From the sequence record NC_005083.2: 64,000 nt of DNA. One strand, written 5' to 3'. The position numbers were made by a program, and so were the translations under genes. Under the pieces are notes generated by a model. The model worked only from the letters and a program-made list of their open reading frames with translations. It was not told where the DNA came from and ran no database searches. This document shows positions 3,078 to 60,182 of this stretch, in pieces (positions within the stretch are counted from its first letter, which is position 1; each line of letters starts with the position of its first letter).

Positions 3078-3106
3078 ATTATACGACGAAAGTGCTATCT
3101 TCTAAA
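3078..3106 (-). promoter_or_regulatory. Promoter downstream of iteron cassette A, driving gene 1
   Basis: (TG)TTTAGA-17 bp-TATAAT. Confidence 0.6.
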
Positions 3107-3130
3107 CATGCACCAGCCATACTAGTTTCT

Positions 3131-3247
3131 CTAATATTTCTAATATCCCTAACTTCACTAAAACTACTAATACTACTAAGATGATGCCCAATTTTTGGGC
3201 CTCAAATCCAAACCTGCCGCTTCGCTCTAGATTCAGATACAAAAAAA
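3131..3247 (-). repeat. Intergenic cassette copy A: GCGAAGC motif, hairpin and six TTAG units at 9-bp period
   Basis: CTAA at 3131, 3140, 3149, 3158, 3167 and 3176; hairpin GCCCAA-AAA-TTGGGC; homologous to 29135-29245 and 57391-57481. Confidence 0.85.
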
Positions 3248-11663: not shown

Positions 11664-12928
11664 TGTTTATGGGATTAGATGGGTTTGAGTGGTGGACTGG
11701 CGTTGTCGAAGATCGAACAACCGACCCACTCAAACTTGGTAGAATTAAAGTTCGAATGATTGGTCTGCACCCAGATAAGAAAAGTTCAGAACAAGGTATT
11801 CGAACTGAAGAACTGCTTTGGGTTCATCCCATGCAGTCTCTTGATAATGCAGCAATGAACGGAATCGGGAATGCTCCTATAGGCGTCGTTGAGGGAACGT
11901 GGGTTTTTGGTTTCTTCAGAGACAAGTTGCGTCAAGATGCAGTCGCCATGGGTGTATTGCCCGGGATTCCCGAAGATTTGCCGAACGGTAGCGTTGGGTT
12001 TAATGACCCGAATGAGAAATATCCGTTAGCAGATAAGCTTAATGAGCCAGATACAAACCGTCTAGCTCGTAATGACGTTGATCCTGACGTATATGACGAA
12101 AGTCAATCTCAGACTGCGTTTGATAACGGTGAAGCGCCTTATGTATATCGACCGCACCCGATCATTGCAAGTAAAAGAGCGGCTGAAGAGAAAGAAATCC
12201 CACTTGCTGGTTACAATGCAGAGGGTCCGAAGTACGATGAGAAAGGCACGCCGTATGCAGCACAGTATCCGTACAATCATGTTCGTGAATCAGAATCAGG
12301 ACACATTCATGAGATTGATGACACAGAGGGAGCAGAGCGTCTTCATACGTATCACAGAACTGGAACGTTTGAAGAAATTCACCCAGATGGTAGTCGAGTG
12401 ACAAAGATTATAGGCGATGATTTTGAGATTGTACATAAGAATCAAAATGTGTACATCAAAGGCAACTTGAATATCACCGTTGTTGGCGACGCGACTTTTT
12501 ACTGTCAGCAAAACGTTACTCAACAGATTGACGGGGACTTGAAACAGCACGTCAAGGGTAATGTTGATCAGCACGTCGAAATGAACGTGACTCAAACAGT
12601 TGACAAAGACGTTACGCAAGTCGTTCATCAGAACGTTACACAAACCGTCGATATGAATGTCACTCAGACAGTGCATCAGAACGTTACACAGACGGTTGAC
12701 GGGGATGTTAATCAAACTGTGGGCGGTAACGTTCAAAGTAACGTCACGGGCGATTACACGCAGAATATCAGCGGTAATTACACAATCACAGTGGGCGGTT
12801 CTATGTCTGAAAGTGTTAGTTCATCGTATACTCGTTCAGCAGCATCAATAAGTGATGATGGTGGTGGCGCAACTTTGAATTTAGCAGGTTCAGCAGCATT
12901 GGACGGCACAACAGTAAGTCTAGGTTAA
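11663..12928 (+). CDS. 5: gp5 cell-puncturing spike (OB fold plus beta-helix, no lysozyme domain)
   Basis: GVVEDRTTDPLKLGRIKVR, YPYNHVRESESGH, 8-residue VxxNVTQT repeats. Confidence 0.95.
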   Translation: MFMGLDGFEWWTGVVEDRTTDPLKLGRIKVRMIGLHPDKKSSEQGIRTEELLWVHPMQSLDNAAMNGIGNAPIGVVEGTWVFGFFRDKLRQDAVAMGVLPGIPEDLPNGSVGFNDPNEKYPLADKLNEPDTNRLARNDVDPDVYDESQSQTAFDNGEAPYVYRPHPIIASKRAAEEKEIPLAGYNAEGPKYDEKGTPYAAQYPYNHVRESESGHIHEIDDTEGAERLHTYHRTGTFEEIHPDGSRVTKIIGDDFEIVHKNQNVYIKGNLNITVVGDATFYCQQNVTQQIDGDLKQHVKGNVDQHVEMNVTQTVDKDVTQVVHQNVTQTVDMNVTQTVHQNVTQTVDGDVNQTVGGNVQSNVTGDYTQNISGNYTITVGGSMSESVSSSYTRSAASISDDGGGATLNLAGSAALDGTTVSLG

Positions 12929-29140: not shown

Positions 29141-29245
29141 GTATGAGCGAAGCGGTAGAAACGGATCGAGGCGGAAAAATTCCGTCTCATCTTAGTAGTA
29201 TTAGTGGTTTTAGTGAAGTTAGAGATATTAGTATGATTAGTATTA
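29135..29245 (+). repeat. Intergenic cassette copy B: GCGAAGC, hairpin and six TTAG units at 9-bp period
   Basis: TTAG at 29192, 29201, 29210, 29219, 29228 and 29237; hairpin GAGGCGGAA-AAA-TTCCGTCTC. Confidence 0.85.
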
Positions 29246-29253
29246 AATACTTG

Positions 29254-29282
29254 TTTAAACCCATGAATGTGCCTGCTATTAT
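29254..29282 (+). promoter_or_regulatory. Promoter downstream of iteron cassette B
   Basis: (TG)TTTAAA-17 bp-TATTAT. Confidence 0.55.
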
Positions 29283-29323: not shown

Positions 29324-29331
29324 TATAAATA
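29324..29331 (+). promoter_or_regulatory. Late promoter (wac)
   Basis: TATAAATA. Confidence 0.85.
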
Positions 29332-54485: not shown

Positions 54486-56009
54486 ATGACAGATATTAAA
54501 ATTGAGTACTTCGATGAGAGTTATGCGAGAGTCGTAGCCGAGCCAAGCATTACTCATGAAATGATTGATTACTTTTCATTTCTAACTGACGGGTACAAAT
54601 TCAACCCTAAATTTAAAATGGGCATATGGGATGGCAAGATTCGACTAATGACGTATCAAGGTCTATTGCCATACGGTCTAGTCGGTCAAGCTAAAGCGTT
54701 TGCATCAAACATGATGTACACGATTGAAACTGATCCACTACTTGATCCGATTGAGAAAATTTCTCGTGAAGATTTTGAAGCATGGGTTTCTTCTCTTGAT
54801 ATTTACGGTGGCAGCAATAAAATTAGCCCGTACTGGTATCAAATGGATTCAGTATTTCACGGTATTAACAATCAGCACAGCCTTTTGAATCTACCAACAT
54901 CGGCGGGTAAATCGCTGATTCAGTCACTTTTGACACGTTGGTTTTTAGAAAATCACGAAGCTCAGAAAGTGTTGATTATCGTCCCAACGACTGCACTAGT
55001 TCAGCAAATGCGTGACGACTTTTTAGACTATCGCTTGTTTGAACACGGTGACATATATCAAATTCGAGGTGGCGTAGATAGAGACGCAATCGGCGACTGC
55101 CGTATTGTTGTTTCAACATGGCAATCGGCTGTTAAGCAAGATAAAGCATGGTTCGATCAGTTCGGTATGCTTCTAGTCGATGAATGTCACTTAGCAACGG
55201 GTAAGTCGCTTGACGGCATCATCAAAAAAATGACCAGTTGTGAATACAAAATAGGTCTTACTGGTTCACTTAGAGACGGTAAAGCTAATATTCTACAGTA
55301 CGTGGGTTCATTTGGTGATATTTTCAGACCTGTATCGACTGCACAGTTAATGGAAGAAGGGCAAGTAACTGATCTGAAGATCAATTGCTTGATGCTTGAA
55401 TATCCTCAGCCACTACGTGATGAAATGAAAGGCAGTTCATATCAAGAAGAAATGAAATTCATTCTTGAGAACAAACAGCGAAATCGTTACCTGATTAAGC
55501 TTGCTCATCATCTGAGTGCTAAGAAAGGCGAGAACACGCTATTGCTGTTCAAGAACATCAAACATGGTAAATTGCTCTACGAAGCATTGAAGAAAGTCTA
55601 CGATCCTGAGAAAGTGTTCTACGTATCAGGTGAAACTAAGACTGACGACCGTACACATGTTAAGAAAATTGCAGAAGATATTGACGGGGCAGTTATTGTC
55701 GCATCATACGGTGTATTCTCGACTGGTATCAGTATCAAGAAACTACACAACGTAATTTTCGCACACCCGACAAAGAGTAAGATCATCAACTTACAGTCGA
55801 TTGGTCGTATTCTACGTAAGCACGGTTCGAAAGTTACTGCGAAGCTGTTTGACATTATCGACAACTTGGCGATCAAGCCGAAACGAGCTAACGCTAAGAA
55901 GCCGTATACGCATGTCAATTATACTATGAAGCATGGGATGCAGCGCATTGAGCTTTACAACCAAGAAGAGTTCAAGTACGCAGTCAAGAAAGTCGACCTT
56001 GCTGCATAA
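54486..56009 (+). CDS. uvsW: UvsW SF2 helicase
   Basis: LPTSAGKS, VDECH, GLTGS, STGISIKKLH, QSIGRILR. Confidence 0.97.
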   Translation: MTDIKIEYFDESYARVVAEPSITHEMIDYFSFLTDGYKFNPKFKMGIWDGKIRLMTYQGLLPYGLVGQAKAFASNMMYTIETDPLLDPIEKISREDFEAWVSSLDIYGGSNKISPYWYQMDSVFHGINNQHSLLNLPTSAGKSLIQSLLTRWFLENHEAQKVLIIVPTTALVQQMRDDFLDYRLFEHGDIYQIRGGVDRDAIGDCRIVVSTWQSAVKQDKAWFDQFGMLLVDECHLATGKSLDGIIKKMTSCEYKIGLTGSLRDGKANILQYVGSFGDIFRPVSTAQLMEEGQVTDLKINCLMLEYPQPLRDEMKGSSYQEEMKFILENKQRNRYLIKLAHHLSAKKGENTLLLFKNIKHGKLLYEALKKVYDPEKVFYVSGETKTDDRTHVKKIAEDIDGAVIVASYGVFSTGISIKKLHNVIFAHPTKSKIINLQSIGRILRKHGSKVTAKLFDIIDNLAIKPKRANAKKPYTHVNYTMKHGMQRIELYNQEEFKYAVKKVDLAA

Positions 56010-56017
56010 TAGATACG

Positions 56018-56047
56018 AAAAAGGGAGCAATTTGCTCCCTTTTTTAT
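56018..56047. terminator. Bidirectional terminator
   Basis: AAAAGGGAGCAA-T-TTGCTCCCTTTTTT. Confidence 0.8.
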
Positions 56048-56161
56048 TAGTCAGAAAAGATTGCCGAGAGAATCGCACCGATTAACTCGAACAGAAATTC
56101 AAATGGCGCCCAGAGCCAGTCGAAAAACCCACGATCTCGTTTACGATCTCTTCCCATACCT

Positions 56162-56332
56162 TTACCCGTTTAGAAGTTGTGTTTCGACAAGTTGCTGATC
56201 GCCGCCAGATTCAGAAATAGCCATTTCTGCTAGATGTTGCTGACATTGACCTGCGTGAACTGTGCCTTGTGGCGTATCAATCGTGACATCGCCTTCTTTG
56301 ATAGGTTGCTTGCATACAACACAATGTGCCAT
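56162..56332 (-). CDS. uvsY.-2: UvsY.-2-like small zinc-finger protein
   Basis: MAHCVVCKQPI...HAGQCQQHLAEMAISES; start re-assigned to 56332. Confidence 0.8.
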   Translation of the reverse strand: MAHCVVCKQPIKEGDVTIDTPQGTVHAGQCQQHLAEMAISESGGDQQLVETQLLNG

Positions 56333-56505
56333 TAGTCTAACCCCGATTTTGTAAGTGATTGGTAGAGTGCGAAGTCGTTGACTTGCAATGAGCCATTCAA
56401 TTCCCACCCGTCGTTTAGTAGCTCTTGCACCTCTTCTTCGAATTCATCTGCGAACTCGTGACGCCGAGATACTACTTTGTATTTATGTCTAAGCCAGTTC
56501 TGCAT
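56332..56505 (-). CDS. 57-aa protein, DUF1737-like (MQNWLRHKYKVVSRRHEFADEFEEEVQELLNDGWELNGSLQVNDFALYQSLTKSGLD)
   Basis: Manual translation; YKVV...V..LL.DGW.L.G...YQ pattern; fills the gap with a TAATG overlap. Confidence 0.75.
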   Translation of the reverse strand: MQNWLRHKYKVVSRRHEFADEFEEEVQELLNDGWELNGSLQVNDFALYQSLTKSGLD

Positions 56506-56506
56506 A

Positions 56507-56920
56507 CTACATACCTATTGCTAGTTTGAATAGAGCAGACGCTTTACCACCATCGAAAACTTTACCTGTAGCCTTTAGAGCGCCCATTAGTTTGCCCATA
56601 TCACGCATAGAATCTGCACCAGTTTCTAGCACGAAGTTAGAAACAAACGTGTCTAGCTCTGAATCGGATATTTTTGCTGGTAGTAAAGACTCAAGAACAG
56701 CGTTTTCCGCGTTCAGGATGTCAACATGGTCGCCTTGTGCATGTTCAAGTGCCAGATTGTTGTTGTCGATTGCGCTTGAGATCACTTTGATGCAAGACTC
56801 ATCATCGTGTTTTTGACGACGGTCAAGTTCACCCATAATGACACCCAAGACAGACGCAACTGCGTTGTTGCGGTCTTTACGAGCTTGTAGGCGTGTTGCT
56901 TTGATTGTTTCGATGATCAT
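56507..56920 (-). CDS. GatB/YqeY-domain protein
   Basis: ARKDRN...LGVIMGEL...ENAVLESLLPAKIS...MRDMGKLMGALK...DGGKASAL. Confidence 0.9.
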   Translation of the reverse strand: MIIETIKATRLQARKDRNNAVASVLGVIMGELDRRQKHDDESCIKVISSAIDNNNLALEHAQGDHVDILNAENAVLESLLPAKISDSELDTFVSNFVLETGADSMRDMGKLMGALKATGKVFDGGKASALFKLAIGM

Positions 56921-57330
56921 ACTATACCACTCTCAATTTTTCTATTATCAATAATGTGTTTAATTGTGAAGCCCATTTGGCTAATGCCTTTCAAAGCTTC
57001 TTCGATGAAAGATAACACATCTTTCATATGTTGAAAACGTGCAATCGCTAATTGAAGAGCTTCATCACCAGCGAGTGCGTATTTCATTTCACTTTTTTCA
57101 ACGATAAAATCACAAACTTCATCGTCATGCTTGCCGCTATAAAAGAGCCAGCGGTCTTTTCTCACTGCTTCCATTTTCATTTCAGCTTTAATAAGAAGCT
57201 GTCTTGCATCGGCTCTATATGCAAGCCACTTTGCATGAAGTACTGGGATTCGAATGGCTGCTGTTTCTAGTGCAGTCGTATCGATCTTAACGTCTTCATG
57301 GTATTCTGCTTTTAAATCTTGTAACTTCAT
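56917..57330 (-). CDS. uvsY: UvsY recombination mediator
   Basis: LHAKWLAY, RWLFYSGK, GFTIKHIIDNRKIESG; start at 57330 with GAGG RBS. Confidence 0.93.
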   Translation of the reverse strand: MKLQDLKAEYHEDVKIDTTALETAAIRIPVLHAKWLAYRADARQLLIKAEMKMEAVRKDRWLFYSGKHDDEVCDFIVEKSEMKYALAGDEALQLAIARFQHMKDVLSFIEEALKGISQMGFTIKHIIDNRKIESGIV

Positions 57331-57350
57331 ATAATACCCTCGCTTCATCA

Positions 57351-57379
57351 AGTATACATATCAAACGGGTTTTTGTAAA
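57351..57379 (-). promoter_or_regulatory. Promoter of uvsY, downstream of iteron cassette C
   Basis: (TG)TTTACA-17 bp-TATACT. Confidence 0.75.
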
Positions 57380-57390
57380 CACGAATCTCA

Positions 57391-57481
57391 CTAATATTAC
57401 TAACTTCACTAAAACTACTAATTCTACTAAGATGAGACGGAATTTTTCCGCCTCTTACCTTTTGCTTCGCGTATAAAAAAA
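57391..57481 (-). repeat. Intergenic cassette copy C: GCGAAGC, hairpin and five TTAG units at 9-bp period
   Basis: CTAA at 57391, 57400, 57409, 57418 and 57427; hairpin identical to copy B. Confidence 0.85.
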
Positions 57482-57497
57482 GCCCCGAAGGGCTTTC
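57475..57497 (-). terminator. Terminator after gene 35
   Basis: AGCCC-TTCG-GGGCT followed by a T tract on the minus strand. Confidence 0.85.
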
Positions 57498-60182
57498 TTA
57501 TTGCATTGCGTAATCAATCGCAGTGATTGTGTCTTCATAGAAACAAGCAACTTTGACTTCAGACACGATAGGCAAAGCCCACATTGTCTGACTTTCAGTT
57601 ACAGATCCCTCATCACGATAGCGCAAGAACATCTTGGCGTGGTCTGATTTCCATCTGTAGAAACTAACTGCGTTCGTTGTGTATGAACCAACGCCTTTTG
57701 CTGTTAAGCTACTTGGATCATCTTCAGGGTTGTAAACGCCGAAGTAGTTTTCATATTTGTCTTGGAACGCTTGATGTTGAGCATCTGTCCACGTATGCGG
57801 TAGAATGAATGCTTGCATCAGAATCCATTTTCCGTTAGCGGCAGGGAAGTTATCAACACGATCAATCGTTGCAAATGTTGAAGCATCTGTTCCATCGGCT
57901 AATTTCAATGTGCTAAACGCATCAGCGCCATCTTTGACTCGACAACTAAAATGTAAATAACCCGCGTCTTTATCAATTGAGTTTACCCACAATGACAAGA
58001 AGTATGGTCTTGTCGGGTCAATATTGATTTCAGACATTTCAATCATTGATTGTGTGCCTGTAGAGCGTGTGAAACACTTCTCGCCATTCGAAAGAACATA
58101 ATTCCCCCAATGAACGTTATCTGTTTCTCTGACTGGCATATTGACATTCTCGTATAGATTCGAGTTCGAGTTGTATGCATTAAACCAGCTTGTGTCATTC
58201 ACTACGTTGCCTGATATTGGTGAATTTACAATATCTTGAGCAGCTAGACCATTTATATTCGAAATCAAATGAGGTGTTCCGCTAGGAACTGCAAACCCGC
58301 CTTTGTAAACGAGTGCATAATCGAAGTACTCTTGGTCAAGATCTGACCAAACGCCAAATGTAACTGCACCTGCTGGGACTTGAACAAAAAACTCTTGAGT
58401 TTCGAATAATTCCGCTGACCCGAAGAAAATATTCTGCCTTGCAACTTCAGTATTCACCGCATTGTACATTCTCAAGTTACACGACTTCGTACCGCCACCG
58501 ATAGCAGTAGTTCTATCAATACACGCTCTTACTTTGTAGATCAGGTATTGACCTTCAACAACACCGAAGTCAGATAGATTGTATCGAGTATCAACGGGTA
58601 CCGTATCACGTGCTAGAAGCGCGTTTCCGAATCCTGCTGAACCGATTCCGTCTTTGTCTTCGAATGCAGTATCAACAATGCTGTCGCCGTCTGACGGGTG
58701 GTCGAATATACATCGATCATATACAATACCTAAATCAGCACGACCGAACGCCGCATAACTGTAGCTGTATTGGCTGAAGTACGAACTTCCTCTATACTCG
58801 ACGGGATTGTATTGATTAATTGCAGCATCAACCGCCGCATCGCCGTACATCGAACCGTTAGAGACGATGATGAAGATTTCATTCGTCAGGTTATTCAATG
58901 CATTGACGAAGTTTCCGCGTTCAGTTGAACTACTCAAAAGATACTTACTGCTTGTTTTCACTGTCAAATCATCATTCATAATCAGAAGACGAATTTGATA
59001 TGCTTGTTTAGTTTCGGGCGTGAAAAGCCTAACATCATTCAAATAGCATGATGCTAGATTCGAACTACCGTTTGCAACACCCGTAGCAACTAGACGATAA
59101 TTGTTATTCGAGAATTCGCGAATGTGTCTAGCCGCAAGTTCATATTCACCGACTCGTGATCCTACAGGCGCATATATCCACAATTCAGTTACATTAACTG
59201 TTTGTCCGGGACCTGGCGTAGAGCCGCCTGACGCAGCTTGCGCACCGATTGCATAATACCAGTTTGAGTGATTCACTGACCCATCAGCAAGTGAGTTTGA
59301 GCCTGTGTTGTACTCAATACCACCCCAATACTGAACGTCAGATTGGATTGAAATCGCTTCATAGCCACGAACCCCACCAGTACGAGCATCATAATCCCCT
59401 GTGTAGTTTTTAATCAACGGAGCATCAGAAATCATGAAGTTAGTCAACCAACGTTTTCCAGTTGGTAGTTTAGCAACATCTGACGTATACCCACAATACC
59501 AGTACATATTACTTGTTGACAGAGTACTAGGCGTCGTGAAACGAGCATAATGACGCTTCCATAAAATTCCATCAACTATACGTTCATTGCCTGCTGACTC
59601 AAACACATCACCCGGGATGTGACCTAGTGTATATGGGTTTGATGCACCGTCATACCAGCGAGAATGAAACAGAGCTGCGGTATCATGATCAGTATCGACT
59701 TCATATCCAACCCAGCATGACATTGTGTATGTTCGATTCGGAAGAAGTCGAGTTTGTGGAACTGAAAACACAATTTGATCGTTGACCGCCGCAGTCGGCT
59801 GCTCGACAACGTATTTTGATGACCCTGGGTTTTCTTTTTCAACAACGACCCATGAGCCTGTTTTTGTCGTTTGTTCAGTAACAAATTGACCTCCAGCCAA
59901 GTTACCGTTTGTCAGATACTGACCTACGCCTTTCGCTGCGAAGTTGTTACTTTGTTTCCAAATATTCGTAATGCCGACTTCAGGGTAATGCAGCTTGAAT
60001 TGGAATTTACCGTCCTCACGACGAAATTCTTCAAGTGAGTTTAACGCACTGAATTTGGCTTCAATGTCGGGATCCGTCCCGACACTTCTAGCCTCAGCAT
60101 CGGAGGTGAAAAATACACCTCCTGTAGAATCATGGCGAAAGATTAGTAACCAATCGCCTTCACGTTTAAGTCTTTCGTACAT
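57498..60182 (-). CDS. 35: gp35 long tail fibre hinge, enlarged with extra N-terminal domains
   Basis: Directly downstream of gp34; 894 aa; central ILEI-like segment typical of gp35. Confidence 0.8.
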   Translation of the reverse strand: MYERLKREGDWLLIFRHDSTGGVFFTSDAEARSVGTDPDIEAKFSALNSLEEFRREDGKFQFKLHYPEVGITNIWKQSNNFAAKGVGQYLTNGNLAGGQFVTEQTTKTGSWVVVEKENPGSSKYVVEQPTAAVNDQIVFSVPQTRLLPNRTYTMSCWVGYEVDTDHDTAALFHSRWYDGASNPYTLGHIPGDVFESAGNERIVDGILWKRHYARFTTPSTLSTSNMYWYCGYTSDVAKLPTGKRWLTNFMISDAPLIKNYTGDYDARTGGVRGYEAISIQSDVQYWGGIEYNTGSNSLADGSVNHSNWYYAIGAQAASGGSTPGPGQTVNVTELWIYAPVGSRVGEYELAARHIREFSNNNYRLVATGVANGSSNLASCYLNDVRLFTPETKQAYQIRLLIMNDDLTVKTSSKYLLSSSTERGNFVNALNNLTNEIFIIVSNGSMYGDAAVDAAINQYNPVEYRGSSYFSQYSYSYAAFGRADLGIVYDRCIFDHPSDGDSIVDTAFEDKDGIGSAGFGNALLARDTVPVDTRYNLSDFGVVEGQYLIYKVRACIDRTTAIGGGTKSCNLRMYNAVNTEVARQNIFFGSAELFETQEFFVQVPAGAVTFGVWSDLDQEYFDYALVYKGGFAVPSGTPHLISNINGLAAQDIVNSPISGNVVNDTSWFNAYNSNSNLYENVNMPVRETDNVHWGNYVLSNGEKCFTRSTGTQSMIEMSEINIDPTRPYFLSLWVNSIDKDAGYLHFSCRVKDGADAFSTLKLADGTDASTFATIDRVDNFPAANGKWILMQAFILPHTWTDAQHQAFQDKYENYFGVYNPEDDPSSLTAKGVGSYTTNAVSFYRWKSDHAKMFLRYRDEGSVTESQTMWALPIVSEVKVACFYEDTITAIDYAMQ

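Follow-up and report, generated by a model that had tools for sequence, protein, structure and literature searches.

A conserved six-copy repeat cassette at the uvsY promoter of Vibrio phage KVP40 and its possible role as an origin-like docking array

Upstream of uvsY, Vibrio phage KVP40 carries an array of short direct repeats that runs into the promoter of the gene. Does this array mark a replication origin, does it control transcription, or does it serve another purpose? We know of no established replication origins or early and middle transcription signals in KVP40-type (schizo-T-even) phages. The KVP40 genome paper reportedly did not identify early- or middle-mode features, and iterons in KVP40 are not mentioned in the papers that could be searched.

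The original prediction for this locus started from T4, where oriF, also called ori(uvsY), was placed at the uvsY middle promoter, in agreement with the published account (PMC3016281). It proposed a positionally conserved origin at uvsY and a separate class of promoters attached to the repeats. We examined both proposals in a window of 64,000 nucleotides, corresponding to positions 180835-244834 of the KVP40 genome, as well as in the whole genome, its relatives and bacterial chromosomes.

The cassette and its copies

The repeat cassette at uvsY (copy C) lies in the 167 bp that separate gene 35 from uvsY, both of which are encoded on the minus strand. Its features are given below in window coordinates.

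57498..60182, minus strand: gene 35 (long tail fiber hinge connector), stop codon at 57500-57498
57475..57497, minus strand: intrinsic terminator-like stem-loop, AAAGCCC / TTCG / GGGCTTT, with a T-run
57464..57470, minus strand: GCGAAGC motif, which corresponds to AGCGAAGCG in most other copies and also heads the sister cassettes in bacterial islands
57434..57454, minus strand: hairpin, 9-bp stem including one G.T pair, AAA loop
57377..57433, minus strand: ATC junction (57433-57431) and six 9-bp units, a tract of ~22% G+C almost without C on this strand
57430-57386, minus strand: units 1-5, of the TTAG.... type
57385-57377, minus strand: unit 6, TTCGTGTTT, of the TTCG type
57351..57381, minus strand: sigma70-type uvsY promoter, TGTTTACA-17-TATACT, -35 box at 57381-57374 and -10 box at 57356-57351
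56917..57341, minus strand: Shine-Dalgarno sequence (SD) GAGGG (57341-57337) and uvsY, ATG at 57330

On the minus strand, the order is terminator, GCGAAGC, hairpin, ATC, six units at an exact 9-bp period, promoter, SD and uvsY, with the -35 box of the promoter overlapping unit 6. The predicted five TTAG units followed by TGTTTACA-17-TATACT are exact in the sequence, and the array ends in an additional sixth unit of the TTCG type. A three-unit TTAGT pattern matched 11 times in the 64-kb window, compared to 0.18 expected matches. The two other copies in the window follow the same plan as copy C, and their promoter boxes were found as predicted.

3078..3226, minus strand: copy A (gene 3 to gene 1), with AGCGAAGCG at 3226-3218 and the array at 3179-3126
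3203-3183, minus strand: hairpin of copy A, with a compensatory CCC/GGG stem
3108-3078, minus strand: promoter of copy A, TGTTTAGA-17-TATAAT
29146..29282, plus strand: copy B (gene 12-2 to wac), with AGCGAAGCG at 29146-29154, the hairpin at 29168-29188 and the array at 29192-29245
29252-29282, plus strand: promoter of copy B, TGTTTAAA-17-TATTAT

The complete KVP40 genome contains six cassettes, located at 35.9 kb (before nrdH), 79.2 kb (after ORF0135), 129.7 kb (before the lipoprotein gene ORF0252), 184.0 kb (gene 3/gene 1), 210.0 kb (gene 12-2/wac) and 238.2 kb (gene 35/uvsY). They are the only arrays in the genome with at least five units and a period of 7-12 bp, and all six are co-oriented with the local genes. 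Five lie just upstream of a promoter, and four are flanked by a strong terminator upstream and the next promoter downstream. Site 3 has neither terminator nor promoter; there, the SD comes from the array itself, which directly adjoins the ORF0252 ATG. The gaps between copies range from 26 to 54 kb, a spacing more even than random placement (P 0.004-0.006) that counts as a single evolutionary observation because the sites are syntenic among relatives.

Several further repeats and motifs were seen alongside the cassettes. At sites 2 and 3, upstream ORFs run into the left arm of the cassette (KVP40 genome 129638-129652; ValKK3 loci L023 and L033; nt-1 locus L022), where AGCGAAGCG encodes Ser-Glu-Ala and the hairpin directly adjoins the stop codon. 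Two additional occurrences of AGCGAAGCG in KVP40 are both within coding regions and were taken as chance. Tandem Repeats Finder (TRF) reported a 54-bp repeat (2.1 copies) at 1178-1293 and a 48-bp repeat (2.5 copies) at 12583-12700 of the window.

Conservation and the uvsY promoter

Conservation in related phages had been proposed as a check of the prediction. The uvsY cassette is kept in position in nt-1 (another genus), ValKK3, 6E35.1a, K566 and 1.081.O, and so are the other five: the same six sites are occupied in all five relatives, beside the core genes 1, 3, 12, wac, 35, uvsY and nrdH. Phage 1.081.O has a seventh, tandem extra copy at the gene 3-gene 1 site. By BLAST, the core is limited to KVP40-like vibriophages and found at the six places in almost every complete genome. 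Pattern scans for the cassette across IMG/VR and one genome per prokaryote species returned only VH7D and chance-level matches; these scans missed the bacterial island cassettes described below, which were found via the ORF0294 protein search only.

Among 39 copies, the TTAG of units 1-6 hardly varies, and a would-be "unit 7" is back to normal composition. The arrays contain 1.9% C versus 23% G, at ~22% G+C. The hairpin stems of the phage copies differ in sequence while the fold is kept (CGGAA/TTCCG, GCCCAA/TTGGGC and a U.G variant), the stem change from CGG/CCG to CCC/GGG between copies being compensatory. In an alignment of 25 sequences, the covariation score of the hairpin was reached by none of 500 shuffles. 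On the sense strand, and only there, the stem accepts G.U and U.G pairs. No Rfam 15 family matched at its gathering score (best 14-22 bits versus cut-offs of 50-70 bits).

At the uvsY site, identity to the relatives amounts to 86-100% for the hairpin, 83-100% for the -10 box and 75-92% for unit 6 with the -35 box. The promoter spacer is only 35-71% identical, compared to 75-100% for the boxes, and the terminator stem-loop is 77-97% identical versus 56-68% for the adjoining gp35 coding end; the start of uvsY reaches 69-87%. Hairpin, -35 and -10 boxes are more strongly conserved than the coding DNA on either side. Copies are homogenised within each genome, which indicates that the cassettes recombine. 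In K566, all six arrays have TTCG in units 3-4, where the near-identical 6E35.1a has TTAG. This concerted change separates two phages with 91-98% identity in the flanking DNA (6E35.1a and K566, loci L013-L041).

Is the uvsY promoter special? Read as TTTACA-17-TATACT, each of its hexamers agrees with the sigma70 consensus at five of six positions. A search of KVP40 intergenic DNA for TGTTTAvn-17-TAtaaT gave 28 loose and 13 strict matches. Each of the 13 strict matches has a T ahead of GTTTA. Cassette promoters account for only two of them, those of nrdH and uvsY; the TGTTTA form is also present in copies A and B, which fell outside the strict filter. At least ten intergenic sites carry the form without any cassette. 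One such promoter precedes the ORF0294-asiA operon, its boxes conserved in five phages and its spacer free to vary. Since asiA is needed before any phage factor exists, the simplest reading of the TGTTTA form is an early-type sigma70 promoter. The early box TTTACW of T4/PST, as given in the PeSL study (PMC4122927), resembles it.

The relation between array and promoter is variable between sites. From array start to the start of the -35 box we counted 48 nt at nrdH, 50 nt at uvsY, 61 nt at wac, 68-74 nt at gene 1 and 72-75 nt at site 2, a distance that is constant per site across phages and different between sites. A separate class of cassette promoters is not borne out: the form is common without a cassette, site 2 uses TTGACA-17-TACTAT, site 3 is promoterless and the array-promoter distance varies. 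The accompanying claim that stand-alone promoters use TTGAC holds within the window but not genome-wide. The uvsY promoter is an ordinary sigma70-type promoter of a form common in KVP40. In every relative, the last unit runs into the -35 box at both uvsY and nrdH, and a factor occupying that unit would have to influence these two promoters. Because site 3, without terminator or promoter, is conserved in all relatives and the array-to--35 distance varies between sites, the core function of the cassette is independent of a downstream promoter.

Candidate hexamers for a promoter within the array, reading either way, were rejected on inspection by eye because they are not conserved between phages. 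Three RNA runs compared with window positions 55500-59500 yielded zero reads, the runs being without phage reads. KVP40 also has a second dispersed promoter family, with five near-identical copies of TTGACnGnnGTCAGCCCTTTCgnGTATTAT (plus strand; KVP40 genome 21147, 59699, 97800, 100194 and 121377) in which the spacer is conserved too. A T4-type late promoter motif, TATAAATA, is located at 29324-29331 (plus strand), ~40 bp downstream of the sigma70-type promoter of copy B, so that wac appears to have both promoter types.

ORF0294, AsiA and the Vibrio parahaemolyticus islands

KVP40 encodes AsiA (166 bits), and neither the N-terminal nor the C-terminal domain of MotA was found in its genome. Whether AsiA-only phages have a functional MotA analogue was left open in the review by Hinton (PMC2988021). 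In the gene 52-asiA interval, where T4 holds motA, KVP40 has ORF0294, which encodes 243 aa from an internal Met, lies 4 nt upstream of asiA and ends in an acidic ...DEEEF tail recalling the ...DEDGDF of T7 gp2.5. ORF0294 has no Pfam family and no PDB sequence match, and the PF24083 and PF10991 profiles did not score in the KVP40 genome. The AF2 model is poor (pLDDT 34), and the ESM Atlas puts the protein closest to ssDNA-binding families of phages (0.92, 189 shared features). No similarity was detected by hhalign to T4 MotA or T7 gp2.5, so that neither HMM nor hhalign comparison backs the ssDNA-binding lead; these negatives, with the lack of a Pfam match and the poor model, count against the docking-array explanation given below.

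An exhaustive HMMER search with ORF0294 yielded five clusters only: the KVP40 group, two metagenomic T4-like contigs and two groups from bacterial chromosomes. Both metagenomic contigs retain the PhoH...ORF0294...AsiA neighbourhood; a related-locus search of IMG/VR with the island or metagenomic homologues returned nothing. Between 6E35.1a and K566, identity reaches its local minimum in the ORF0294 region (91-94% versus 98-100% beside it).

For one bacterial group (P0012), the sources name Vibrio parahaemolyticus. The homologues, 28-32% identical to ORF0294, are encoded in chromosomal islands that lie beside pntAB where the flanks are visible. Within the ~1 kb preceding the ORF0294-like gene, the islands carry a six-unit TTAG cassette nearly identical to that of the phage, with a promoter-like TGTTTAAA site after the array. 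The same upstream region contains sister cassettes composed of AAGCGAAGCG, a small hairpin, (C/T)ATC and an array with other units, either 9 bp (TTCTTTAnC or TTCATTnnn) or 8 bp long (TTAGAnnn or TTGTTTAC). Their arrays are G-free, where those of the phage are nearly C-free. Island hairpin stems read TGACAA/TTGTCA or CGACAA/TTGTCG, and island proteins and array types do not pair one to one. The islands also encode homologues of KVP40 ORF0291 (62% identity) and endonuclease VII, as well as a protein related to the KVP40 genes at 107.3 kb and 35.7 kb. Based on the co-occurrence of gene and cassette in these islands, ORF0294 is a candidate reader of the arrays.

Other elements of the islands were recorded in passing. 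A small ORF before the ORF0294-like gene, considered as a ribbon-helix-helix protein, lacked Pfam support. One V. parahaemolyticus island (L169:5279-5390) contains ~14 tandem 8-bp units in which TTGTTTAC alternates with TTGAGTAC; the unit repeats the word TGTTTAC of the phage -35 box and could form a decoy or sensor array. In another (L155:9273-9389), three exact 36-bp tandem repeats, each opening with AGCGAAGCG, lie upstream of the island cassettes. A TATAAATA motif is located between array and ORF0294-like gene in a third (L150, 9367-9374).

What the arrays may do

In T4, oriF and oriG consist of a MotA-dependent middle promoter and a downstream A+T-rich unwinding element (DUE; Kreuzer and Brister, PMC3016281). 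The KVP40 locus resembles oriF in that an A+T-rich tract lies beside the uvsY promoter of a T4-related phage, and T4 likewise has several dispersed origins. However, oriF has no repeats and its DUE is downstream, whereas KVP40 combines a promoter of the -35/-10 type with an A+T-rich repeat tract upstream, in a module present six times. Where T4 has a box centred at -30, the KVP40 box occupies the -35 position and no MotA box is present; the 22% G+C tract is the array itself, upstream of the -35 box rather than downstream. The uvsY site is not of the oriF type. Of the proposed conserved origin at uvsY, the conserved cassette position stands, but it is not specific to uvsY, which is one of six sites, and it lacks the anatomy of T4 oriF. 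The site might instead be an origin of another, iteron-like type.

Iteron systems offer further parallels. The arrays are tandem direct repeats in a fixed register (six units, exact 9-bp period). T4 oriE, too, shows short direct repeats at even intervals in a T4-type genome and is syntenic in relatives, the role of its 12-nt iterons being undefined (PMC3016281); it differs as a single locus with a 12-nt period and without a hairpin, the AGCGAAGCG motif or multi-copy dispersal. Plasmid and satellite origins (R6K gamma, P4 ori/crr, PLE) likewise use tandem short direct repeats to dock an initiator, and the island arrays adjoin the candidate reader gene, like rep-ori modules. ORF0294, by contrast, gave no sign of a known initiator fold, the units measure just 9 bp and are contiguous, and none of the six phage copies is beside the ORF0294 gene.

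Copy C is an ordinary uvsY promoter together with one of six conserved cis-acting DNA cassettes. Our leading explanation, plausible though somewhat short of an even chance, is that the cassettes are docking arrays for a phage-encoded multimeric factor and act as origin-like loading sites. The factor would nucleate at the hairpin/ATC junction and fill the six 9-bp units of the easily melted 22% G+C tract, and the filled arrays would mark six evenly spaced loading sites for the phage DNA machinery in an iteron-type, origin-like fashion. At uvsY and nrdH, where the last unit overlaps the -35 box, occupancy would also gate the promoters. The candidate reader would be the ORF0294 family, co-transcribed with asiA. 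Binding by a protein, the choice of ORF0294 as reader and a part in replication are our inferences, whereas anatomy, copy number, synteny, even spacing, hairpin covariation, the ordinary promoter and the joint presence of cassette and ORF0294-like gene in the islands can be read from the sequences. A promoter-independent role is suggested by the even spacing, the promoterless site 3, the lack of a fixed promoter geometry and the battery of island arrays beside an ORF0294-like gene. Docking arrays are further favoured by the occupation of all six sites in the relatives, the covarying hairpin, the conservation of non-coding parts above that of the flanking genes, the unit 3-4 change in K566 alongside the divergence peak at ORF0294, and the ssDNA-binding lead and gp2.5-like tail of ORF0294. 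The different construction of T4 oriF and oriG (promoter plus downstream DUE) speaks against an origin, and the co-oriented placement of all cassettes, five of six upstream of a promoter, would suit transcription control equally well.

Somewhat less likely, in our estimate, is that a phage transcription factor standing in for MotA works with AsiA and uses the arrays as upstream operator or activator sites. Such a factor would time nrdH, gene 1, wac, uvsY and other genes, and the islands would have copied the site for switch-on at infection. The placement between terminator and promoter, the perfect co-orientation and the position of ORF0294 next to asiA favour this idea. The genome has asiA and lacks the MotA domains, as in the phages for which a MotA analogue was considered (PMC2988021); ORF0294 sits 4 nt before asiA in the motA interval, a neighbourhood kept by the two metagenomic T4-like contigs; five of six cassettes precede a promoter, unit 6 covers the -35 box at uvsY and nrdH in every relative, and the islands have their promoter-like TGTTTAAA after the phage-type array. 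The likeness to MotA/AsiA at T4 middle promoters thus extends to AsiA itself, a candidate reader gene at the motA position and an array over the -35 box at two sites. Yet a MotA homologue is missing, ORF0294 has no similarity to MotA, and the KVP40 box lies 19 bp from the -10 box, compared to 11-13 bp in T4. The TGTTTA form is used without an array at at least ten sites, including the asiA operon, which is fired before any phage factor is present, while site 3 is promoterless and site 2 has TTGACA. Array start-to--35 spacing differs between sites (48 to 75 nt), and even spacing along the genome is not expected from regulation alone. On balance, we slightly favour origin-like loading over transcription control.

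The remaining two explanations appear improbable. The cassette may act as an RNA or ssDNA element, with a hairpin and a nearly C-free, unstructured UUAG tract cooperatively bound by a single-strand-binding protein; modelled on the T4 gene 32 operator, binding would control translation or stability of read-through transcripts. The tolerance of G.U and U.G on the sense strand only, the skew of 1.9% C versus 23% G, the SD supplied by the site 3 array next to the ORF0252 ATG and the ssDNA-binding lead for ORF0294 from the ESM Atlas are in line with this idea. Against it count the position of four of six copies between a strong terminator and the next promoter, where they would be poorly transcribed, the island sister arrays, which lack G instead of C, and the lack of an Rfam match. 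Least likely of all, the cassettes could be terminator/promoter repeats of the PeSL type, providing dispersed homology for recombination and modular gene shuffling without a dedicated reader protein. In nt-1 and KVP40, the PeSLs of the study cited above (PMC4122927) combine a stem-loop with an AT-rich stretch and an early promoter; its text does not mention the present repeats. Like the PeSLs (Arbiol 2010; Comeau 2014, PMC4122927), which also recur within genomes of the nt-1/KVP40 type, the cassettes pair a terminator-like stem-loop and an AT-rich stretch with an early-type promoter and an SD, and the homogenisation of copies within each genome indicates recombination. However, PeSLs occur in large numbers in hyperplastic regions and are associated with indels, whereas the six cassettes have fixed, syntenic positions across genera, by core genes and not at indel hot spots; a location in hyperplastic regions with indels between close relatives was not found in the five relatives examined. 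In addition to the 9-bp array, the cassettes contain a second hairpin, which covaries, and terminator and promoter are both absent from one of them. The strict 9-bp register, the six-unit length, the covarying hairpin and the precise copying in host islands point to a selected function read from the sequence. In copy C, the terminator stem-loop is ~95 bp upstream, and TTTACA and TATACT are outside the KVP40/nt-1 consensus that the same study gives for PeSLs (TTGYVH-N17-TAWWAT, the -35 part being TTGYVH).

Extended to the bacterial host, docking arrays might form an initiator-iteron system in which the six arrays are fired or read by ORF0294, and satellite-like islands of V. parahaemolyticus might eavesdrop on it through a phage-type array kept beside arrays of other specificities before their own ORF0294-like gene. 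We put this combined scenario forward tentatively and consider it rather unlikely in its entirety. The cassette is a sharply defined and easily mutated cis element for which ORF0294 can be named as candidate reader and of which host islands hold natural variants. This makes both the origin question and the question of a MotA analogue directly testable. Beyond this, it may point to a satellite or defence relationship in phages of a seafood pathogen.
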